Below, one piece after another: positions 26 through 34,520 of a stretch of DNA of 38,363 nucleotides. The notes under the pieces were generated by a model. The model searched no databases. It saw nothing but the letters and a program-made list of their open reading frames with translations, and was not told the DNA's origin. The translations under genes were made by a program, and so were the position numbers. This DNA comes from Octopus bimaculoides (taxonomy: Eukaryota): assembly GCF_001194135.2 (NCBI RefSeq), contig NC_068981.1:59229228-59267590 (forward strand), given 5' to 3'. Every line of letters begins with the position of its first letter. Position 1 is the first letter of the stretch.

Positions 26-41
26 CAACAACAACAACAAC

Positions 42-104
<63 letters not shown>
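23..104 (+). repeat. (AAC)n(AAT)n compound microsatellite, the LINE 3' tail
   Basis: Directly visible; abuts the UTR end on the left and an RT fragment on the right. Confidence 0.95.
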
Positions 105-105
<1 letters not shown>

Positions 106-911
106 TCTGAGGTCATCCATGAATGACAAGTGGATGACTTTTTGTTGGCGGCTCGTGAATACATAGCTAGTCTTTGCTTTCCTCAGAATCAGTGTTAGTG
201 ATATCATGCATAGTACAAAGATCAGTGGGGACAGGTAGTCCCCTTTGAAGATGCCTCTCCCGATTTCTATTGTCCCTAAACTAATCCCATATACTGTCAC
301 TTCCGTCCTCTACTTCACCATACTCTTTCTAAGCAATCTCTCAACATTTCGATGCAATACCAAATAGGTTCATACATTCCATAATCCAAGAATGTGAGAT
401 CATATCGTATGCCTTTCGATAATCGATCCATGACATGAATAAGTTAGTTCTCATCCTCTTGTACAGTTTTGTACAGCCTTATTCACCAGGAATTGATCCT
501 TGCTACTTCTGTACTTACGCTTGCAACCCTTCTGCTCATGTGGCAGGACTCCATTTTTTAGATGTCCGTACATTGACTCTGTGACTATTCCAGTCAATAA
601 TTTCCACGTAAGTGGCAAGCAGGATATCGGCCTGTAATTGTTTACCGTATTGCCTTGTTCTATGCTTTTCAAGCAGAGCACTGTCCTACCCATTGTCAAC
701 CACTCTGGTGTTACATGGTTGGCATTTAGCAAGGTGTTGAGTTGTGCAGCTATTTGTGCATGACATTCACCAAATCTCTTGATCCAGTAGCCTTGAACTC
801 TATCTGGTCCCGGGGCCTTTCAGTTGCCCATTTTTTGCTGATTTCCTTCAGTTCCGTAATTGAAATGACTAGTTCTGCCGGTTTTGAACAGATTACTGTT
901 TGCTTGAGTTC
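105..911 (-). mobile_element. Decayed R4/Dong-clade reverse transcriptase, N-terminal half (inverted 5' segment)
   Basis: Minus-strand translation with frameshifts gives NYRPISCLPLTWKLLTG, EQKGCKRKYRSSKDQ, SWIDYRKAYDMISHSWI, GIFKGDYLSPLIFVL and HLSFMDDLR. Confidence 0.92.
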
Positions 912-1150
912 TTTATGATAAAGATGAATCCAAAGTCAGTTCCCTCGTTGATACAGTGTATACTTTCAGTGCTGATATCAGAATGGAGTTCAGACTGAAA
1001 AAGTGTGATGTGTTAGTCTTGAAGAGAGGCAAAATCAAATGTATGTACGGGCTGGCGATATCGTCGGGAGAGCTTATGAAGCAGAAAGAAGAGACGGGCT
1101 ATAAATACTTGAGGATACTGGAAATGGATAGATTGATGAAGAAAAAATGA
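911..1150 (+). mobile_element. Continuation of the same RT immediately after the FMDD motif, in the opposite orientation
   Basis: LYDKDESKVSSLVDTVYTFSADIRMEFRLKKCDVLVLKRGK...GYKYLRILEMD; highly similar to the collinear copy at 31115-31330. Confidence 0.9.
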
Positions 1151-1169
1151 CAGAAAAAAAATAACAATG

Positions 1170-1497
1170 ACGACGATGTCATTATTGTTATTATGTGATG
1201 AAAACTCACAGTTTATTTTGCTGGATATGATGGAAAGTGTCAGCTGTCCACAGCCAGCGGACTAAGGTGACTCTTGTTTACTAGTCATGCTTCAAGAACC
1301 CTACGAAGAATTCTTGCAGTTCCAAGCAATGCTGACGTTTTTTAAGTGTTCTACTTTCACAACTGCACCAAATTTTTTCAGACATGTTGGTAGTTGAGTG
1401 CTGATACTTCTAAGTGCACCAGTTACTATTGGTATCACGTCTACTCTCCTCATTGACCATAATCATCGTATTTTCCACTTCAAATCTTCATATGAAG
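1170..1497 (-). mobile_element. 3' end of an R4/Dong-like LINE: RLE C-terminus, short UTR type ii and degenerate AAT tail
   Basis: Minus strand reads YEDLKWKIR*LWSMRRVDVIPIVTGALRS...(frameshift)SALLGTARILRRVLEA*, then ~90 bp of UTR and an AAT-rich tail at 1170-1200. Confidence 0.85.
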
Positions 1498-3123
1498 CAG
1501 AAAGAAGAAAATATCCTACTGTAGAATAACATGTGGTAGCCAGATAACAAGAATAAGTGTTTTTTTAAATGCATGTTCTTGTGCTACTGCTCGATTTTGT
1601 AACTACGTGTATGTCAACGATTTTTGAAGATGTCCTGAAAGTTTTAATCTGCCATTGAATCCTTACCAGTTACCCACAAAATAAGCTTAGAGGAACCAAT
1701 TCCTTGTTTCTGAGATTGTAGAGAAATATGATGTGTTTCAGTCTTACTAATCGTTATTGGTTTTGTTTACTCGGGTTATGACCTGGTTGGTACGTGATGT
1801 TATCAAGAAGAGTCCAGCATCATCAACTCGTCTTCGCTTCAGACGTTGTGTATCTATGACATCATTATGCTGTGTGTAACGCAAATTTTAAGACAGTTGG
1901 TGTAATTTGAGGAGATTAGGTTGTAGTTTTTAGCAGATTGAGCATTCTTGTAGAAGTGCCGGATCAGTGAGCAATAAATCATTAATTTCAGAATTGCACT
2001 GGTGTAGCAGAAGTATCTGATAGGAATTTACCATTAATCTTGTACAATGTTTTTAAAAGCTGTTAAAATGTCTAAGGTTGTTCATCTATACTTGAAGAGA
2101 TAAGAAGACATAGATAGAAAAGCCAAGGTGATTCACACTTATCTACAATAATCTTATATTATAAAGCTGGCTGTGCATTTATGTAGAAAAAAAGCATACT
2201 AGATTGCATGATAGGCAAATATTAGAAAGTGAACGAAATGCAAAATGCAAAATCACTGAGAGAAATAGATGAAAAATGATGGAGAAAATGAGAAACAGAA
2301 TATAAAAATGGCATAACATTGCAAGATCTCTGTCAATTTTAAGAACGGTAATACGGTTGAATATAATAGCGTTTAGAAACAACTGTAAATTGTTTTCCTG
2401 GAGACAATACTTATGACGCTCGTAGGCTATATCACACTAGTGAAATTAATACAGTTGATATGCAGTTTAAACATCTGCGTAATCTTATTTCACATTCTCC
2501 ATTCATTAAAAGTCTATGTAAATTATAATGTTATTGGTACTGTTTTATAGACATTCGACGGAAGGACGGGGCCTTACCAGACCTGGAAAATTATCAACCA
2601 TTTTAGAAATAGAATTATTTATTTCATCTGAGGACCACAACTAAGAACAGTAATATAGTCGATGAACTGGGCAAGAAATTAACTGCTTTCGGCAGTAAGG
2701 TTCCAGCTCGGGAAGTCAGGAGTTTTGGTAAGTCTGGAGTGACTCCGTAATCACCTTTACTCTCAGGGCTGCTCTGGCTCGGGTGGTAATACCTGTCAAG
2801 GGCCACAGTTATAGGTTAAATAGTAGAAGATGTGCGCCGTGGCTAAGACTTACAGAACGTAAGAGACAGTTGCTTGCTAGACACATGTCATCAGACACTC
2901 CGGTGTGTGGAGAAGTACTAAGGTCACGTGAACCAGTTCCCTTTCCTGAAAGTTAATGTGACCCTTTGCCTGAAGAGTAAGCTCCAGAAACAAGAGACTA
3001 GCAAAGTAAACTGTAAATAAATATACAGAATGGAACAGGACACCACTGCTATACCTCTCAAGACAAACCATGCATCTTCAAACTTTGGCATGGAGGTACA
3101 TACCTGTAGAAGAGGTATAGCAC

Positions 3124-4572: not shown

Positions 4573-4781
4573 GGCGAGAGATGGCAGAATCGTTAGCACG
4601 CCGGGCAACATGCTTAGCGGCATTTCGTCCGTCTTTTCGTTCTGGTTCAAATTCCGCCGAGGTCGACTTGGCCTTTTGGGGTCGATAAAACAATTACCTG
4701 TTGACTACCGGGGTTAATGTAATTGACTTAAACCCCTCCCCTAAACTTGCTAGTTTTCAGTCAAAAATTGAAATCAATATT
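4573..4781 (+). mobile_element. tRNA-derived SINE, family 1
   Basis: A-box-like TGGCAGAATCGTTAG and B-box-like GGTTCAAATTCC; homologous to copies at 13290, 20055, 27247 and 28020. Confidence 0.88.
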
Positions 4782-6211
4782 AATAGTGTGATAAGATTAA
4801 TCCAAAATATTTAACTTTTTCTTTTCCATTTGTTCTTAAATATGTGAATGGTTTCTGCATATTTTGTTTTGGCCTGTTTAGCTTTTTAGCTTTACTGTCA
4901 ATAGAACAGGATGATGTATAGCCAAATATTTTTTAAAAAATGACAGTATATATCGCTTGTGTTCTTCAACTCACCTCACTAATCTGTATGTATATAAAAG
5001 GCAGGATATGTATATACGTGTGTGTGTGTACGTGAATGTAATTTATGCACGTCCACAAATTAGCACGCATGTCGCTCCAATTTTAGGAGGACATTCGTCA
5101 TGACTCTAGCTGTATTTTCGTCAACTTATTTTTCCCAGAGGCACCAGCAAATAGCGGTAAAAATAAATTTTCAACCAAAACTTTTAACAATTTTCAAGTC
5201 GGAGAAATGTGTTAGTGTATTTTAGTATTTTTAATCCCTAATAACTTTTTATTTTAGGTAGATTTTCTTTTTCGATATTTTCGTTATTATTTTAGTAATT
5301 ATAATACGCTTCTACCTCTGGGTAATAGACGCCATATTTATCACGTGACCTTTCAGTATAAATTCTATAGTATACCCATTTTGGTCTAATCTACAGTAAC
5401 TCGCCGGCAGATAAATCATGTTCTCTAATTTTAATTTTCTAAACAATATTGACATACGTCTTTTATTAACTTTATACACTAACACATTTTTTTTACTATT
5501 TTTTACTATTATTTACTTCTTCCATAATGATTTAACCTTGTTCACTATAATACTCTTTTTCAATATTTTTAGATTGTAACTCTTAATAACTATATTAATA
5601 CCATTAACGTAGGGATTAGTTTACAGGTTTTGTCTCTTTATATAATTTTTTTTTCTCATGTTTATGTTTATTCCTTGAATGATTTTAGGTATTTTTTTTA
5701 GGAATTTGACCTGAAGTGTGACTGATTTTGGGAGTAAAATCATTTCCCCGTTCTAATGAACTTGGATAGAATTTGCTTATGACTTTATATAGTCCTATTT
5801 CAGCCATGAATCGCGCGTAGTCTATGTACTAGTACTGACGTTTATACATGTATACTTTCACACATTATATTATTGTATTAATTTTTACTGTCCTATTTAT
5901 AATTTATTTGAGTTTTAAATTAATATTTTTATGATGTATGTTTCTTTATATGATTAAAACTATTAAAATTTCAGATTAAAATATTAGATAAATATTGATA
6001 TGGTATATGCCTCACAGCCTAGTTTTGGATGGGTTCTTAGTTGACTGAGTTGTACAGTAGTGGTTCGTCTCTAAATTAGTTATATACATATATATTATAT
6101 ACTACGAAACCCGGTGTAATATTATACCGAATTTTGCCTGTAAGGTTGGAATAAGTTTTTATTCCCTAATATTATTACTATCTATTACTAATATTATTAC
6201 TAATTTTATTC

Positions 6212-6247
<36 letters not shown>

Positions 6248-6506
6248 ACATACATACATACATACATATGTATACATGTGTGTGTATGTGTGGGAGCGTG
6301 TGTATGTGTGTATGCGTGTGAGAGAGAGAGTGTGTGTGTGTATGTGTGCGTGTGTGTATATTAGGCGATATATTGAATATTCTTTCCGATTTGGTGATAA
6401 AGTATCGATTTCATACATACATATACTCATCTACATTTCCCTTACACACATATATACATACACACACACACATATATATATATATGTATGTATGTGTATA
6501 TATTTA

Positions 6507-6538
<32 letters not shown>

Positions 6539-7006
6539 NNNNNNNNNNNNNNNNNNNNNNNNNNNNNNNNNNNNNNNNNNNNNNNNNNNNNNNNNNNNNN
6601 NNNNNNNNNNNNNNNNNNNNNNNNNNNNNNNNNNNNNNNNNNNNNNNNNNNNNNNNNNNNNNNNNNNNNNNNNNNNNNNNNNNNNNNNNNNNNNNNNNNN
6701 NNNNNNNNNNNNNNNNNNNNNNNNNNNNNNNNNNNNNNNNNNNNNNNNNNNNNNNNNNNNNNNNNNNNNNNNNNNNNNNNNNNNNNNNNNNNNNNNNNNN
6801 NNNNNNNNNNNNNNNNNNNNNNNNNNNNNNNNNNNNNNNNNNNNNNNNNNNNNNNNNNNNNNNNNNNNNNNNNNNNNNNNNNNNNNNNNNNNNNNNNNNN
6901 NNNNNNNNNNNNNNNNNNNNNNNNNNNNNNNNNNNNNNNNNNNNNNNNNNNNNNNNNNNNNNNNNNNNNNNNNNNNNNNNNNNNNNNNNNNNNNNNNNNN
7001 NNNNNN

Positions 7007-7066
<60 letters not shown>

Positions 7067-7150
7067 GTGTGCGTGCGTGCATGCGTTTGTGTATGTGCTT
7101 GTATGTGTGTGTGTGTATTCATGCATGTGTGTATGTTGGTGTATATGTGT
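6212..7150. repeat. Compound (TATC)/(TACA)/(TG)/(TA)n microsatellite block containing a 468-N gap (6539-7006)
   Basis: Directly visible. Confidence 0.95.
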
Positions 7151-7949
7151 GTACCCAAGCACACAGAGGTATTTATTCTTTCCATATTCTCTTAAATTCC
7201 GAAATTCTTTTGTATGTTTAGTGTTTACTCCCAGAATGAAGCAGCTGCACATTCGTAAGAACCTAAACAAATAAAGGCATGTACATTTCCCCCACACAAA
7301 GACACTTACACTCCAATGAATGAAATGCACAGAATAGTTACGATTTAAGTTATAGCCAAATCAATGAATTAAAGAAAAGAAAAAAACATGTCAAAGTGGA
7401 AAAGAAAACGATGGAAAGCCATAGGAAGAGCTACTTATAAGACTATATCAGCTTTTTCTAGTGTATTTAGCATTGAGAGTTCATTACACTGGACGATGTT
7501 CATTCAAAAGTACACTGATGGCAATAGTAGTTTGAATAATTTAGGCGCACGACGAGGAGGAGAGAAGGAAAAAAACAAATATAAATGAAAAATGATAAAA
7601 AGATGGACATGAATATAGGAGAGAATATGAATGAAAAATAGTATCTAAAATTATCTACAGAATGGTATAAAAGAAAGACACCTGATTTCGTTTGTCATTT
7701 ATAGGCTGTCCTTTTCCTCAGAGAATTCGCGTTCTTTTGCGCGACACCAGACTGAGCATCATACTTAACGTTAAAATAACTATTTCAGTATAATGTAAAA
7801 CATGACTGAGAGAAATTGTTCGTGAAAAAAAGACCAAAACAAGACAAAAAAAAACAAAAAAAAACAAAACGAAAAATGTTTTGAACAAACAAAAAATATA
7901 ATAAAAGAAGAAACTTAATCAAATGTGCGTTTATATATTCAACTACATC

Positions 7950-7990
<41 letters not shown>
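7950..7990. repeat. (TA)n microsatellite
   Basis: Directly visible. Confidence 0.95.
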
Positions 7991-7998
<8 letters not shown>

Positions 7999-9188
7999 CA
8001 GCGTACAGAACCTCTGGTTTTCTGGTAAAGTCAGAATACCAAGGTTTGTGGCTAAATTTTCTGTACTATACTTAACTGCCATTAGATTCATGAAGGAGAG
8101 CTGTTTAATGATAGGTGAAATGTAAAAAGTATCCATCGTGATAATAATTTTTAAAACGCTTTTATTAGTTTGTCTTCTTAGAGTAGACGTGCTTAGTCAC
8201 CATGATCTATATATTTTCACAGATAGGAATAAAAATTATTTGTTCACACTAGAATATGAGTTAATCTAGTGGAATAAGATTATTTGAGGTGTAAAAAATG
8301 TTAATAAAATATAGTGAATAAAGAATATCAGATACCGCATTTTTCTGGCTTACAAATTGAATTCCCCAGACCAAAATTTATAGCCAAAAATAGAAGAATT
8401 TAGAGGGCTCAGAGTTCCATGTGAAATAAGTAAGATTTGGAAAGATTGTGGTGAAGTTAGAATGCTTGCACTATACGTTTACACTACATAGTACGTCGAC
8501 TTGTATACTGGAAAATACGGTAGAACCTGTAAACACCAAAATAGATACAACGGAAGATATCTATTATTCGCTGATTCGTTTGCAAATTCTGGAATTATAA
8601 CTGATTATTCTTACCATTAATGATTTTGCGCAATCTTTAACCTCGGGTGAGTAGTAAAAGAAGAGTCCTTTGCTAAGTTAGAGAATATTGGAAAGCCAGT
8701 TAAGATTGACATGGTTAGTGTTTAAAGCTATGTGAGAGGAAAATTGGCAAGAAATACGTTGAAAAGCTTTGTAGTCTCAGAGATACGTCTTTGATAAACA
8801 TTGAAGTAGTAACTGTTGTAAAGAATAAGAGAAGTGATATAGGTAGAAAACTTAAAGAGGATCTTTGTAGTCACAATATAAGACATAAAATATTGGAAAA
8901 GGATAGAATAGGGATGTTTTCCCTGTCATGCAATAGTCTGTTTGGTTGGTTGTACTTCCTTCAAATTAACCCTGTTTATGATATTGATATATACAAACAA
9001 CGTTTGATTAGACGACCTATTGCATTGGGCCTTGAGTTCAAAATCATGTATGTTTCATTGATATTGTTGGTGTTGTTTAATCACAAGTAAATTCTAATTG
9101 GGCAGATCGTTAATTTAAGGAGCTTCAGTAGCGACTATTTCGTCATTTAATTTTTCAGATATAATGTATCTAGAATTGTATCGTCTAA

Positions 9189-9541
9189 TGTCTTTCCTTT
9201 TAAAGAACAATTACTGTGCGATTTGAGGACGTTTTGGATGCTATTTCTAGCATGACTCGGGAAAACTTATAGATACCGGAAACTGAGAATTTGTCGGAAA
9301 ATGTAGCTAAAGCTGATCACCGATTGATGGGTAGTTCTGAAGATAAATGGTTAAAACCATCTCGTCTATTGAACAGAGAAATGTTCAGGGTAAATAAATA
9401 TTTATCCAGTCTCAATTATAAATTCATTTGAAGACTGTCTTAACACACAACGTTTAGTCAGTCTACTTTTAGTAGTTTCAAACAATAATGATTAAGCAAC
9501 TTAAACATTAAATATCTGTGCTTCATATTTGACATTTCATA
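9189..9541 (+). repeat. Direct repeat, copy 1 (~350 bp)
   Basis: Aligns by eye with 10998-11297 (GTCTTTCCTTTTAAAGAACAA ... CTTCATATTTGACATTTCATA). Confidence 0.9.
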
Positions 9542-10387
9542 ATCATTGTTATATATCAATAAATGCTTATTTATATAACTTTGGGGCGGTGAGAGTAGAG
9601 AATGTGAGATATGTCAGTATTATTGCTTTTTCTCAAGATTATATGAGACGTATGTGAGAACAGTTCTAAAAGAAAATCAAAAGTTGCTGTGCAAAATGAA
9701 GTCGAATAATCATCGTATAACTGCGAATCTAGAATATAACAATTTATGTGAATGATTCAGATAGAAAAATATTGACATATTTTGAAACATCTTTTATTTC
9801 AATTTGGTTTTTCACGATATACCAACGCATTTATTTTTAAAGAGATTGAAAACCAACGAAAAATAAAAGTTACTTTCAAATGAAATTGGTTGGGTGCAAG
9901 TGGTTTGCAATGCAGTATTCTTTTGCGACACTGAGATCTGAGTTCAAATCGTCTTCGTTGTTTACACAGTATAGACATAGTCTAGTAATGGTGTTTATTT
10001 AATTGAACACCACTTCCTTTAAATTTATGAACATACGCCTCAATTAGAAATTGGTTTCTGAATAACTTTCAGGTTCTAAGAGATTTTCTACTATTGTGTC
10101 AATGGTGTTGACACAGTAGGTTAAAACCTAGAGGACTAATGAAGGGCAAGAACGAAAAGTTTTAAAGAATCAAGGTGTTCACGGAGTTTAACTTCATAGT
10201 TTATGCTGGAGAAGTTTCAACCTAGAGACTTTACCTTTTCATAGCAGTGGTACCAGTGAGTAACGGCCGCTTCGGATAAACTATACAAGTATAAAAATTC
10301 GTCAGCCGGTTATTGGGTATCACATATACATATAATTCAATTTTAGTAAACAGTATACATACATACATACGTACATACAAATTTACA

Positions 10388-19956: not shown

Positions 19957-20054
19957 CTTCATGGAAATGAAAGGTGAATTTGTTCATGAGATGAAGAATT
20001 ACAACTGCTTTCTGATGTAGATTTATCGTTGATATTACCACTTGTTCTTGGTGG

Positions 20055-20215
20055 CATTTCATCCGTCCTAACGTTCTGAGAACAAATTCCGCTGAGGTCG
20101 ACTTTCATCATTTTGGAGTCGATAAAATAAGTACTAGTTGAACACCGGGGTTGATGTAATCGATTTACTCTTCCCTCAGAATTGCTGGCTTTGTGCCAAA
20201 ATGTGAAACCGATAT
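20055..20215 (+). mobile_element. 5'-truncated SINE, family 1
   Basis: GTTCTGAGAACAAATTCCGCTGAGGTCGACTTT...GTCGATAAAATAAGTAC...GCTGGCTTTGTGCCAAAATGTGAAACC. Confidence 0.82.
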
Positions 20216-20589
20216 TACTACTTATTGAAATAATTTTAATTATTCTGCCACTACAGTGTCCGCTGCGTTTCGGAGCTAGTTGGCTTCATTCAAACCCATC
20301 AGTTAATTAGTCTTTTCTTCTTTCCTTCTTCCATATTGTATCCACCAGATTTTGCCCTAAAAACTACTCCAATCCTTTCTTCTTAGAATGTTGGCTCTCT
20401 GGAACTCCTTCGACGTAGAAGTTTCTTTTTCTGTAGACGTCAACTCGTCACTATTCAAAAGAAAAGCTCAATGTGTCGGTCTCACCAATCTTAGCAGGAC
20501 TGTGAAAGTCGAAGGCACAGCCTCTTCTTCCAGGCCAGATTAGTTAAAACATGGGTTTTCTACAAGCGGTTGCAATTGCGATGCGTTAC

Positions 20590-27243: not shown

Positions 27244-27468
27244 AGGGCGGCAAGCTAGCAGAATCGTTGGGCACGATGGGCGAAATGATTTGCGGAATTT
27301 CGTCTGCCGTTACGTTCTGAGTTCAAATTCCGCCGAAGTCGACTTTGTCTTTCATCCTTTCGGGGTCGATTAAATAAGTACCAGTTACGTACTGAGGGCG
27401 ATGTGATCGACTTAATCCTTGTTTGTTCCCTCTATGTTTAGCCCCCTGTGGGAAATAAAGTAATATGT
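27244..27468 (+). mobile_element. Full-length SINE, family 1, with a 20-bp target-site duplication (27224-27243 and 27843-27862)
   Basis: A box TAGCAGAATCGTTGG, B box GAGTTCAAATTCC; the 20-mer ATATATTTAGAACGCCAAAT is identical at both sites. Confidence 0.9.
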
Positions 27469-27837
27469 GGATCTTTTCCTTTTCATGGGCAGTTCGATTA
27501 ATTAATTTTCTTAAACTAAACACTTTGAAACTTCGTATACTGGTAGAATGCATCATATAGAACATTTTTTACTCTTTGCGTTGTTGAGAAAAGTTTCTAT
27601 TTACGAAGTTATTTCGTGTTAAAGTTGTCGTATTTCGGTAATTTCAACCAATCAATGACGTGTATTTAGCTGAATAGAATTACTGCTATTGTTTGTCAAC
27701 AACAACTATCGAAATAACTTCTTAGATAGAAACTTTTCTCAACAACGCTAAGAGTAAAAGATGTGCTGTATGACACATTCAAAGTTTCAAAGTGTTTAGT
27801 TTAATTAATCGAGCTGCCCATGAAAAGGAAAAGATCC
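27469..27837. mobile_element. Foldback MITE with ~130-150 bp terminal inverted repeats and a probable 9-bp TSD (Mutator/Foldback-like)
   Basis: Left arm 27469-27616 is the reverse complement of right arm 27710-27837 (GGATCTTTTCCTTTTCATGGGCAG ... GAAGTTATTTCG); flanks are GTAATATGT and GTAATATAT. Confidence 0.88.
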
Positions 27838-28019: not shown

Positions 28020-28210
28020 TTGGTGAGCCGACAGAATCGTTAGCACGCCGGGCAAAATACTTGACAGCATTTTGTCTGTTTTTACGTTTTGAGTTCAAAT
28101 TTCATTCTTTAGAGGTCGATGAAATAATTACCAGTTGAAAACTGAGGTGGATGTGGTCGACTTACTCCTCACCCGAAATTGCTGGCCTTGCGCTAAAATT
28201 TGAAATCAGC
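28020..28210 (+). mobile_element. SINE, family 1, with an internal deletion and a ~15-bp TSD
   Basis: GACAGAATCGTTAGCACGCCGGG ... GAGTTCAAATT; flanks ATTTCTCATCGTACA and ATTTCTCATCATACA. Confidence 0.85.
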
Positions 28211-30639: not shown

Positions 30640-31590
30640 AATGTAACATACTGTTACATTTCCTCCTATGACTAGAGTTCATACCATTGATGATTATTGT
30701 AGTTTCATAATGTTTGAGTGTGTCTTCCGTTATGCCTTTCTATCATAGCGAGTCTATCATATAGACAGTACTGCAGAACTAGAGATGAGGCTAGATTATT
30801 ACCAAAGTGATCGCAGAACCTGCAGTTCAGATGTACACCAATTTTTTAATATATTCATCTCGATAGTTTCTGATAAAGAAACTCAAGTCTTGTGCTGCTG
30901 ATATAATCCACCAGTCTCTGCTTTTAGCCCAGAAATTTTCAGTCACTGATGGATTATTCTCTGATTTCCATCAAAATCTTTGTTTCAGAGTCCTTACTGT
31001 CCGCATAGATTTTTTTTTTAGCCTTGCTTTTATGCTATGTACTTGGTGCTATGTGCTAACTGTCAGAGTTTTCCTATTGACCTATTGAAAATATCCGGCA
31101 CTTTTGTGGTAAATGTATCCATTTCCAAAATCCCCAAGTACTTATAGCCCGTCTCTTCTATCTGCTTCATAACCTCCCCCGACGGTATCGTCAGTCTGTC
31201 CATACATTTGTTTTTCCCCTCTTCAATACCAACACACCACACTTTCTCAGTCCGAACGTCATTGTGATATCAGCACTGAAGGTATACATCGTATCAACGA
31301 GGGAACTGACTTGGGCTTTATCTTTACCATGAATAACAAATGGTCGACTTTTTGTTGGCGGCTTTTGAATACATGCCAAGCTTTTGCTTTCCTCAGAATC
31401 AGTGTTAGTGGTATCAAGCACAGTACAAAGATAAGTGGGGACAGGTAGTCCCCTTGGAAGATGCCCCTCCTAATTTCTACTGTCCCTAAACTTTTTCCTT
31501 ATGCTGTCAGGTCCGTCCTTCAATTCGCCATACTTTTTCCAAGCAATCGCTCAACATTCGATGCAATCTCAAACAGGTTCATACACTCCA
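30640..31590 (-). mobile_element. 5'-truncated, internally deleted R4/Dong-like LINE (RT core plus C-terminal knuckle region)
   Basis: RRGIFQGDYLSPLIFVLC, KAQVSSLVDTMYTFS...GYKYLGILEMD, then IHQ*LKISGLKAETGGL/ISAAQD...CRFC and QWYE; near-identical in places to 105-372 and 911-1130. Confidence 0.88.

Positions 31591-31672
<82 letters not shown>
31591..31672. repeat. (TAT)n, the (AAT)n tail of the element at 31673-32990
   Basis: Directly visible. Confidence 0.95.
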
Positions 31673-32990
31673 GAGTGAGAGAGCAAGGCATGCCATCACA
31701 ATGACACTGGGGTAAAATATACGAAGCCCAATATACCCATCATGACTATAAGTCTGATAAGGGTACACCGGACACATGCATCACAACCAAATGTGCGTGA
31801 CATGGCGATCTCATATCAAGATAAACAGTGCATGACCTCGCAGGTGGGGCCCAGTTAAGATTTTCTTCAGGTCGAATAGCCCATCCTGTTCAAATGATCC
31901 TTGAATAAGGATTGTTTAAGAATGTTGAACGAAACACCTATATTTCCAGAGATGAATTATTCCATCTCCAAAGGAATCCTCTCAACACATGATGGTCCCT
32001 TACTACTTCTGCACGTGATCAGACATGCACATATCATCATCCACCAAAGGAATGCTCAACTGGTTAAGGTCAAACACCTGACAAGAAAATATGTTTTATT
32101 GAGCATATTTGCTGTAGCCCATCTTTTATACCAAAACAAAACATGTACACGATAACACTTTCAATCAGTTAAGATCAGAATCCATGAGAGCCATTGCCTG
32201 GTACTACTCAGAGCGCTCGGTCTTGTTTTCTCTGGTTGATTATGTGAGAGCGGAGAGCAGCCTGTTGTCAGAGGTCTCACAGGGTCTCTTTCTGCATATT
32301 ATAAGCTTTGATACTTGGTAGTTAATTATCGTGGGAGGCATTCAACATCCAAGTACTATCTCAAAATTCTAGCTGTCCCCAGCGGAGCACAGTTTTGGGC
32401 TTGCTCTACTCTCATGTCAATTCCAATTTCTTTGAGGTATTTCTCGAACTTGGTTGTTAGTGTTCCGAGTGCTCCTACGACTACTGGAATGCCGGACACT
32501 CTCATCATAGTTCACACTCTTGCTATTTTGTTTTTTATAGTCTGTACTTTTCAATCTTTTCTAGTCCTTTGTCACTTATGCGTGCATCCCCAGATATTGC
32601 AATATCTATAATCTTGGTTTTCTTTCCCCCTTTATATATCATCATATCTCCATTGATCATACATACGTTGTCGGTATCCCCTAATATGAACACTATTTTC
32701 GTCTACAGGGTTTCTCAGGTAGTAACACTCCATGACCACAGCATTAATTTGTTTGTTCCATCTACACCGTGCGTGCTGGTCCCTTGCTAGATAACGACAG
32801 GCTGGAGCCTACCGGGTGCAACACTGTCACCATCAAGAGCTTTAGTTTCATTACCACCGTTACTTATAATATTTTGTTTTTTCATTGTTACTCGTATGAG
32901 GTAGCGTTTATCAGGTTGCGCAATTACCAGTGTTTTTATCGTGACACCATCATTAGATGTATCATCAATCAGGACATGGGGAGATTCCAA
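31673..32990 (-). mobile_element. Internally deleted (RT-less) R4/Dong derivative: N-terminal ORF region fused to RLE, followed by a ~660-bp UTR (type iii)
   Basis: RCRWNKQINAVVMECYYLRNPVDENSVHIRGYRQRMYDQW joins at ~32650 to DMMIYKGGKKTKIIDIAISGDARISDKGLEKIEKY...IPVVVGALG...LGTARILR. The 5' boundary is approximate. Confidence 0.8.
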
Positions 32991-33179
32991 CCGCTTCCTT
33001 TTATTATCATTATTATCGTCACTGATATTATTATTTTCATTGCTTTTACTATTTGTCATTGTTAATATTTCCTTTGATCCGACATTAGTTTTGGCGAAAT
33101 TATTAGTATTATTATTGTTTTTTTTCTTGTTTCTTCAAATTTTCTCCCATTTCTCGCCGAGTGTTTTCCGTACACCTAG

Positions 33180-33640
33180 GGCAGAGAAGCTCATTGTATG
33201 CATTCCCAGTTTACACACGCAAATTCACAGGTAAAATATGTATTTTCCAGAAAGCTATATACTTCATCTTCTTTGGGGTCAGTTAAAAGTTTTCAGAGTT
33301 CAGGTAAAACAGTATAGGTCTACAATTGCTGACTTCCCCTTTCATTTCTTTGTCCTTTCGCATCAACTGCCTCCTTCGTCACCCATGTTGGTGTTCCATT
33401 TTCTTTGCAGTCAGAATACCTGTCGTATATAACTGTATATACTTGGAATATTTTTGAGTGAGAAAACCTGGATACCATCTTGTGCAGAGTATTTCCAATT
33501 TGGTATTCTTTGATTATCGCTTTTTCATTCTTATCTATGATTGCTATATTTTCTTTTATATTTTCTTGTGTTATTCTATCTTCCGTTTCTCTTTTAAATT
33601 CCCGGAACAAGTCTACTGTTATATTATGTTGGACTTCTGT
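33180..33640 (-). mobile_element. Older, heavily decayed R4/Dong RT N-terminal fragment
   Basis: Across frameshifts: RIPNWKYSAQDGIQVFSLKN, ENGTPTWVTK, KDKEMKGEVSNCRPI, EVYSFLEN. Confidence 0.55.
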
Positions 33641-34520
33641 TCCCCTCTCTTGACTAACATTACACATTTATATATGCCTAATTCCATGCCTATATCTTTG
33701 TCGAAAAGTCTTACAATCTGTATTAAGGAATCTATCTCTTTTTCATTCTTACTAAAAAGCTTCAGCTCATTCATGTAGAGAAAAATGGTTAATTTCTCCC
33801 TTACTATTTCTGAACTGATACCCTGCCTTTGTCTTCTGTAATACTAAACTGAAGGGGATCAAAATAAGACAAATATTAAAGGGGACAACGAGTTCACCTG
33901 GAATATTCCTCTTTTGATATTAACTTTCCCTAAGAGTGTGTCACCTGAATAGAGATCTACGTTCTATTTTTTCATGCTAAAGCTAATTAATTCTCTTATG
34001 TTTTTTGCTATACTGAATATACTCAAACATTTACTTATCCATGAGTTTGGGATCATGTCATAGGCTTACTTATAATTTATCCATGCTATTGTTACATTTT
34101 TCTTTCTAGCTGTTACTTCATTTAAAACTGTTTTTGTCTATATATAATAGATCATGCCTTTCACTAACCTTCTTCCTGCAACCTATCTGCTCTTCTGGTA
34201 TTAAATTCTGGTTGTCAAGGTGCCCGTAAATGCATTCTGAAAGCATTCCTGTTAAAAGCTTCCATACTGATGGTAAGCAAGTGATTGGTCTATAGTTGCT
34301 AGCTGTATTACTCATGCTCTTATCCTTCATAATAAGTATTGTTTTCCCTCTAGTCATCCAATCTGGTATTGTTCCTCCATTAAGGCAATCGTGAAGTTCT
34401 TCCCTCAGCCTCCCATGTAAACTACCGAATTTCTTTAGCCAGTACACTTGAACTAAATCTGGTCCTGGACCCTTCCAATTCGGCATTTTTCTTAACACTT
34501 TACTCATTAACGCACCAGTT
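33640..34520 (-). mobile_element. 5'-truncated R4/Dong RT fragment
   Basis: MPNWKGPGPDLVQVYWLKKF...NYRPITCLPSVWKLLTG...IPEEQIGC, AWINYK*AYDMIPNSWI, RGIFQVNSLSPL, LYMNELKLFSKNEKEIDSL...KCVMLVKRG. Confidence 0.9.

Follow-up and report, generated by a model that had tools for sequence, protein, structure and literature searches.

Twin priming has been described for the 5' inversions of the long interspersed element (LINE) L1 (Ostertag & Kazazian 2001, as cited in PMC4245944 and PMC6895275), and in cell culture 5' inversions were found only for L1 in human cells and in one Nimb-2_DR insert, with none for ZfL2-1; experimental studies treat this classic footprint of twin priming as essentially specific to L1 in human cells (PMC4245944). 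For LINEs with a restriction-like endonuclease (RLE), such as R2, the priming of the second strand is still unsettled (PMC6895275). Among the elements of the R4 clade, Dong is the known (TAA)n specialist, with a snail element, DongBg, as one example (PMC3812793; PMC4640811); in octopus genomes, 'Dong-R4' LINEs are numerous and have been active recently (PMC13282606, PMC8967140). Our full-text literature searches found no paper that describes twin-primed natural copies of RLE-type, R4 or Dong elements. We analyzed a stretch of 38,363 nucleotides of the Octopus bimaculoides genome (contig NC_068981.1, positions 59,229,228 to 59,267,590; hereafter the window), the left end of which carries an inverted and rearranged copy of a Dong-like LINE beside a (TAA)n microsatellite. 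We put at roughly 55% the probability that this copy is the product of an aberrant insertion of such a (TAA)n-targeting LINE, in which twin priming was accompanied by additional template switching.

Inversion junction at the microsatellite edge

The window starts with 25 nt of unique sequence ahead of a compound microsatellite, which is proposed to be the upstream flank or target of the insertion, the 3' end of its top strand being the proposed primer (Table 1). The adjoining piece B is decayed, with stops and frameshifts, and encodes on the minus strand ...ELKQ.. via NYRPISCLP and WIDYRKAYD to FMDDLR(+C), which corresponds to about amino acids (aa) 201-450 of the relative at locus L001 introduced below. 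The reverse complement of 105-125 reads TTC ATG GAT GAC CTC AGA C (FMDDLR + C), and the 3'-most base of the inverted segment abuts the upstream flank, as in twin priming. The plus strand resumes at 911, at the start of piece C, with CTT TAT GAT AAA GAT GAA (LYDKDE), continuing as LYDKDESKVSSLVDTVYTFSADI...YKYLRILEMD. Piece C begins at the base next to the end of piece B, with one shared letter, which is again a feature of twin-primed copies.

Relatives of the element were obtained by protein search, and one of them, P0001, was aligned to the window by tblastn; its aa 1-243 matched 831..106 on the minus strand and its aa 244-319 matched 911..1138 on the plus strand, with no codon missing and none doubled at the 243|244 point. 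The family is very abundant, and most raw reads of the same species that were placed at 85% likeness stem from its other copies. Of these reads, about 200 link 105 to 912 or 106 to 911 across opposite strands, a single letter matching either side, so the family is collinear across the inversion point and the 1-nt overlap of the window pieces is real. Family reads placed on the inverted piece extend to 913 before diverging into GCAACCATTCAGCATCC..., the reverse complement of ...KKDAEWLQ; the CTT at 911-913 therefore belongs to both B and C. The initial annotation had already noted that the minus piece ends in ...GACCTCAGAC at 105 and that the next codons follow at 911 with a 1-bp overlap, in the order flank, reverse-complemented 5' part, adjacent part. 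These observations are confirmed by the sequence, by P0001 and by the collinear reads, and the layout is exact.

A second copy in the window, collinear across the junction (copy 2), is 85.4% and 85.5% identical to B and C, and the more distant L001 relative 72.7% and 73.0% (blastn). These near-equal values indicate that both pieces come from one subfamily, which the initial annotation had left to be checked, as it had the support of reads around 905-915. Logan contigs of unique depth, from runs of three studies, cover 85-200, 798-974 (and with it the B|C junction), 1023-1211 and 1433-1500+ with 0-2 mismatches; since they lie over every junction, an assembly artefact is excluded. The chance that two independent fragments meet within +/-1 nt in an element of ~4 kb is about 1e-3.

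We denote the ends of B on the element as x and y, C then running from y to z. At y, 6/9 bases pair with a primer ending in ...AAT-3', the terminal base being mismatched, and only 10 of 1043 positions are as good (best 1%). Annealing of the primer at this site may help and is not required.

Table 1. Features of the rearranged copy, of the collinear comparison copy in the window and of the inverted relative at L001 (aa numbers refer to the L001 relative)
Feature	Position	Strand	Details
Compound microsatellite (CAA)6(TAA)20T	26..104	+	(CAA)6 26-43, (TAA)20 44-103, T104, then G105
Piece B, inverted 5' segment, antisense reverse transcriptase region	105..913	-	Read homology to 913; tblastn of relatives
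CTT microhomology, 3 nt, at the internal inversion junction	911..913		Joints 106 to 911 and loose end behind 913
Piece C, sense reverse transcriptase segment, LYDKDES...YKYLRILEMD..MTEK	911..1158	+	About aa 451-532; tblastn, reads
Palindrome D-spacer-E, 35 bp	1159..1193		Arms AATAACAATGAC vs AATAACAATAATGAC; contig 1023-1211 at unique depth
Piece F, antisense true 3' end of the LINE	1194..1492	-	Last ~66 codons and 3' untranslated region
Piece G, TATGAAGCAGAAAGAAGA, 18 bp	1491..1508	+	Exact sense duplicate of 1075-1092 in C; two occurrences only in the window
Fragment of unrelated repeat, 41 bp, right boundary	1507..1547		Many contigs match 1507-1547 alone
Copy 2, same family, collinear across the junction	31112..31670	-	(TAA)n 31593-31670; 5'-truncated directly at (TAA)n
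L001, (TAA)n flank	5740-5889
L001, antisense 5' part, 2.1 kb	5890 to ~7986	antisense	aa 406 back to the N-terminus
L001, sense part, GGGAATATTTCAGGGAGACTCG...	7997 to stop, 3' untranslated region	sense	From aa 398; then (TAA)n at 9639

Element family and a second inverted copy

The closest protein match led to locus L001, which holds a nearly intact relative with an open reading frame (ORF) of 926 aa. This ORF consists of a basic N-terminal region, a reverse transcriptase (RT) domain, a CCHC knuckle (CRVCGDKGETVWHITSQC) and a KPD-x14-D nuclease-like region, the latter two recognised by eye, and has a conserved C-terminus (...VIPIIVGALGT...LLGTA.ILRKVL). Pfam gave RVT_1 and a weak zf-RVT on the 926-aa ORF and no match to Exo_endo_phos, the apurinic/apyrimidinic endonuclease (APE) domain. 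A single ORF with an RT and without an N-terminal APE domain is the layout of RLE-type elements, and among solved structures the R2 proteins matched best, ahead of L1 ORF2p. The family is apparently RLE-type, with an R2-like architecture.

For the insertion target, 13 loci fetched via related proteins (11 non-redundant) were surveyed; they yielded 25 non-redundant Dong-like copies, from other genomes and biased to intact ORFs. All 25 surveyed copies, which lie in arrays separated by (TAA)n, have (TAA)n on the sense strand on both sides, copy 2 of the window has it upstream in the sense orientation, and other 3' ends of the family of piece F are likewise followed by (TAA)n. Insertion into (TAA)n in one orientation is a feature of Dong and R4 elements, and judged by its target together with its R2-like architecture the family would be Dong-like. 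An RLE-type, AAT-targeting LINE was what the initial annotation had proposed; the RT, the lack of an APE match, the ranking of structures and the flanks are consistent with this, the nuclease motif being a reading by eye.

In the window, copy 2 stands in tandem with an older, more divergent Dong-like element (32359-34519, minus strand, aa ~201-926) in the same (TAA)n array, which is typical array-building by a site-specific LINE. Copy 2 has a 19-bp deletion (ATGACCTCAGACTTTATGA), with ATGA repeats on either side, that spans exactly the B|C inversion point, and its homology is lost about 30 bp upstream of the end point of piece C.

Locus L001 also carries a related Dong-like element with the complete 5'-inversion geometry and an intact 3' part at 5890-9563 (region 5740-9680). 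Its inverted part reaches the conserved 5' terminus TGTC(A/C)TGGGTATGAC (TGGGTATGACATTAAAC), which in L010 immediately follows (TAA)n in four copies of full length. At the junction, a short extra partial repeat (AAATATTTCAG) follows the inverted part, and 17-18 nt, GGGAATATTTCAGGGAG(A), are doubled, occurring at the flank-adjacent end of the inverted part and again at the start of the sense part. Such a duplication is expected when two complementary DNAs (cDNAs) overlap and cannot arise by conservative inversion of DNA. The search for further copies suggested by the initial annotation thus had a positive outcome, though in a related family of another genome. Among the surveyed non-redundant copies, 5' inversion was seen in 1/25.

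Two further observations concern joints of this kind. In run X1, one unique-depth contig for window 83-400 joins 105 to 178 with an extra A, and this may be a second (AAT)n|antisense junction of the window family in the same genome. At L006:11380-11480, a Dong-like copy jumps internally from about aa 555 to aa 838; a 17-nt sequence (AAGTGCACTATTATTGA) occurs twice there around a TAATAATATATAGAG patch, and the 3'-shortened piece ends at a (TAA)-like patch.

Right-hand mosaic and competing origins

The sense piece C is only 248 bp long and is 3'-truncated, ending inside the ORF at an A5 run at 1158. The family consensus past 1158 is TTTAAGGTGGAGTACTTGCGCAGACTGAGA (FKVEYLRRLR; starts TTTAAGGTGGAGTAC...), in place of which the window has AAATAACAATGACGACGATG.... 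The end of 1150 given in the initial annotation was therefore about right for the plus piece; taking that piece for the 3' part of the element was not, as the true 3' end lies antisense in piece F. Between C and F stands a palindrome, composed of D (AAATAACAATGAC, 1159-1171), the spacer GACGAT (1172-1177) and E (GTCATTATTGTTATTA, 1178-1193); read through, it is AATAACAATGAC, then GACGAT, then GTCATTATTGTTATT, the reverse complement of AATAACAATAATGAC. Piece F has E as its (TAA)-like tail, and D is the same tail in the opposite orientation, a 3-nt indel apart. The palindrome was also considered as 3' untranslated region (UTR) of the family and rejected, as the read depth of the family falls away left of ~1181-1195 and an (ATT)n tail takes this place, before ~1181, in other copies of the F family.

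Piece F encodes YEDLKWKIR.LW..VIPIVTGALR..LLGTARILRRVLEA*, which matches aa 861-926 of the L001 ORF, and window 1287-1351 matches the L001 3' end by blastn. Family reads run on past 1492 as GTTGTTTATTTTTTCTTC (...KEEKINN|YEDL), so piece F is 5'-truncated at that position. Piece G shares 2 nt with each neighbor, TA with F and GA with the next repeat, and it carries the near-private A of position 1086, where 925/956 family reads have T (variant in ~3% of reads). An assignment of 1491-1508 to the F family was rejected, as family reads go on as GTTGTTTATTTTTTC after 1492. As a separate observation, many reads of other LINE 3'-end copies are joined, at the differing truncation points 1421, 1428, 1443 and 1470, to one perfect 28-nt palindrome, GGTTCGTCCATCGATCGATGGACGAACC, which may be another element or a recurrent hairpin product.

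The right boundary is a fragment of an unrelated repeat, whose family consensus runs ...AGGAGTTCCACATGTGTATCCAGCCCTG | fragment 1507-1547 | TGGCATAAGAGCTCTTAAATGCATG.... One contig from X13, 1671 nt long, can be aligned to the window from 1509 to the right and carries 84 further nt, with the loose-end consensus AGGAGTTC.ACATGT..CAGC.CTGG. Contigs of organisms B, D and E match the unique flank to the right of 1509/1562 (about 92% identity), and in sister organism B the orthologous contig goes on leftward as the unrelated repeat, in place of the LINE pieces. This suggests that the right junction is specific to the present lineage. No contig spanning 1168-1175 was found in X13 or X18, no collinear or empty allele was readable in sister-species contigs, and exact look-ups of 11 window ORF variants gave no match for the locus left of window base 1.

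The order at the locus is flank, antisense (y to x), sense (y to z), tail, spacer, inverted tail, antisense (3' end to a point c1 on the element), sense 18-mer and truncated foreign repeat, with overlaps of 3, about 3 (A run), 2 and 2 nt at the joins. C and F each depart from the family majority at roughly 7% of sites. The locus is a four-piece mosaic; it is no canonical twin-priming product and no model case.

The favored reading would run as follows. The endonuclease of the element would open the microsatellite, and one cDNA (piece C, bottom strand) would be under synthesis from the element RNA when the 3' end of the top (TAA)n strand, freed by second-strand cleavage, primes the same RNA at the internal AU-rich site y. 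The second cDNA would copy 0.8 kb upstream from y, giving piece B, while the first-strand cDNA would approach y from 3' of it; both cDNAs would then anneal by their 3' ends via CTT/AAG and be sealed, to yield flank, antisense (y to x), sense (y onward). On the right side, a jump from the tail to the internal A5 run, or internal priming there, would be combined with hairpin-like copying of the tail across the 6-nt spacer, with the look of a snap-back; the cDNA of the genuine RNA 3' end (F) and 18 nt recopied from C (G) would follow, and a last microhomology join into neighboring DNA would cost target sequence. The right-hand part would thus be serial template switching in the same event, and we infer that RT, rather than later repair or replication, made the joins, in one event.

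Several lines of evidence argue for this reading. The exact adjacency of B and C, their 1-nt overlap and the flank-adjacent end at the microsatellite edge point to twin priming at B|C, as does the 3-nt microhomology, which is expected of two annealing cDNA 3' ends. The element at L001 is an independent example with a junction duplication, y is among the top 1% of pairing sites, B and C are equally diverged from relatives, and every one of the 25 related copies, like copy 2, is inserted in (TAA)n in the same orientation. The near-private variant common to C and G and the like divergence of C and F favor a single event or a single template.

Other observations weigh against it. Piece C fails to reach the 3' end of the element, so that this copy lacks a defining feature of twin priming, one that the L001 example has. 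The alternation of four pieces, the 2-3-nt microhomologies at every junction and an 18-nt templated filler from 400 bp away are equally typical of microhomology-mediated break-induced replication (MMBIR) or polymerase theta. A target-site duplication (TSD) is unreadable, with a microsatellite on the left and a truncated unrelated repeat on the right; that repeat is longer in the sister species, so the event involved a deletion and the original target is not reconstructable. The geometry was found in only 2/~28 copies overall, a small and biased sample, and a read-based count of joints between (AAT)n and antisense element sequence in this genome gave 7 joints, none at the microsatellite apart from the 105 to 178 hint, with a 22-nt repeat anchor that leaves it little power. 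The inversion point of L001 pairs at only ~2/9 positions with the primer (manual count), which together with the terminal mismatch in the window means that annealing is not a consistent feature. Of the interpretation in the initial annotation, twin priming accordingly stands as regards the B|C geometry and microhomology and falls short of the four-piece mosaic with its antisense 3' end, and internal priming from the AAT target keeps its well-ranked pairing site and lacks the terminal base pair and a counterpart at L001.

The main alternative, which from a single locus keeps a lower but real probability, is a later DNA rearrangement, in which a collinear 5'-truncated element (or two lying tail to tail) in (TAA)n was scrambled after insertion. 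A break at the fragile microsatellite or at the palindrome would have been followed by end joining, by fork stalling and template switching (FoSTeS) or MMBIR, or by templated insertion through polymerase theta; x..y would be inverted in place, z..c1 deleted, the 3' end inverted and the 18-nt filler added. Much of the right-hand side agrees with this: the orientation alternates, microhomologies of 2-3 nt stand at B/C, F/G and G/H (G and the foreign repeat), G was copied from nearby C with its near-private variant, the D/E palindrome has a 6-nt spacer, and at the right junction this lineage has lost, by deletion, part of a repeat whose leftward continuation organism B still has intact. A two-break inversion is also conservative and fits the 0-1-nt change at y. 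However, it requires one break exactly at the edge of microsatellite and element and a second that restores exact adjacency, and it leaves unexplained why y is a top-1% pairing site for the 3' end of (TAA)n. L001 shows the same geometry with a duplication that inversion cannot produce, and contigs of several individuals show no collinear allele.

Two independent tail-to-tail insertions appear considerably less probable still. Here a twin-primed plus-strand B-C and a separate minus-strand, 5'-truncated F would each have taken one arm of an older (TAA)/(TTA) palindrome as primer, and a later deletion would have added filler G. The 3' junction of F is canonical, with a (TAA)-like tail as in other copies of the family, each arm of the palindrome ends (TTA)-like at the 3' end of its own strand, and (TAA)n arrays do gather several insertions. 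Set against this, G contains the near-private variant of C, the odd variants AAC and GAC occur in both arms, suggesting that one arm was copied from the other, C is still left without a 3' end, and all other surveyed copies have one orientation per array.

Snap-back of the first-strand cDNA, which would fold back and copy itself, is very improbable as a substitute for twin priming. Antisense-to-flank junctions made by R2 proteins have been attributed to snap-back (PMC11371274), and the D/E palindrome may be a small product of this kind; the process would, however, give an inverted duplicate of the sense piece, whereas B (x..y) occurs only once and all of it is 5' to C (y..z), as in L001. A snap-back origin of B was rejected on these coordinates and is kept for D/E only. 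Least credible of all is an assembly artefact or a chance juxtaposition of unrelated fragments, which the high repetition of the family might invite, given that contigs of three studies span each junction, that chance adjacency has the low probability given above and that the pieces are equally diverged.

Elsewhere in the window there are four copies of a tRNA-like short interspersed element (SINE; 4584-4785, 20047-20220, 27258-27418 and 28032-28208), a self-inverted repeat of 370 bp at 27469-27837, and a run of N (assembly gap) within a (TA/TG)-rich tract at ~6500-7080.

Comparison with known systems

Capture of LINE cDNA independently of the endonuclease, or in double-strand break (DSB) repair, is known for L1. 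The present locus resembles such captures in its 3'-truncated, rearranged pieces, its microhomology joins and the deletion of target; it differs in that the left junction lies in the family's own target and the tail of F is canonical, so the endonuclease was probably involved.

RTs of the R2 type switch from one template to another and also use DNA as a template (PMC6895275), and template jumping of the R2 RT in vitro was described by Bibillo & Eickbush (2002, 2004, as cited in PMC6895275). Continuous synthesis over discontinuous RNA and DNA templates would yield a chain such as B-C-D-E-F-G; jumping is, however, an in vitro property, and the literature consulted attributes no natural mosaic of such kind to it. 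Target-primed reverse transcription (TPRT) by R2 depends less on pairing between RNA and target than that of R1Bm and several other site-specific LINEs (PMC6895275). In R2-protein-driven insertions in human cells (PRINT), upstream target was found joined to antisense cargo, along with snap-back products (PMC11371274). An RLE-type protein (here apparently so), the passage from upstream target DNA to antisense element, hairpin-like copying and internal gaps with microhomology are common to those insertions and to this locus. The PRINT products are inverted duplications of cDNA from engineered RNAs, in contrast to the unique upstream sequence and the natural genomic copy seen here.

Like Dong, the family has (TAA)n flanks in fixed orientation and a single ORF in which an RT is followed by what reads by eye as a CCHC knuckle and a PD..D nuclease-like region at the C-terminal end. 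The likeness rests on target and architecture, and HERO-clade families are in part also microsatellite-targeting (PMC4640811).

It is a tentative generalization, which we hold somewhat less probable than its opposite, that the RTs of RLE-type microsatellite LINEs regularly prime RNA from the 3' end left by second-strand cleavage and afterwards move from template to template, RNA as well as cDNA. The upstream 3'-OH would then be accessible to the RT after top-strand cleavage and extendable on RNA, a measurable share of Dong-like copies (about 2/28 here) would be 5'-inverted or mosaic, and twin priming would belong to TPRT in general instead of being peculiar to L1 in human cells. Consequences would follow for models of second-strand synthesis and for the inverted and snap-back by-products of R2-based gene-insertion tools (PMC11371274). 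Since Dong-R4 elements are numerous and recently active in octopus (PMC13282606), a genome-wide census would be straightforward.

The closest parallel is the twin-primed L1 copy. Both consist of a flank, an inverted segment and an adjacent sense segment, the inverted segment being the sequence immediately upstream on the RNA, with microhomology at the junction; the overlap is 0-1 nt here, and L001 has its 17-18-nt duplication. The differences are that the present element is a microsatellite-targeting LINE of R2-like architecture and not an APE-type L1, that the sense segment in the window stops short of the 3' end and is followed by more inverted pieces, and that the TSD is unreadable. L1 twin priming itself is textbook knowledge; what is new here is a twin-priming footprint in natural copies of RLE-type-like elements, with two examples, one of them clean.

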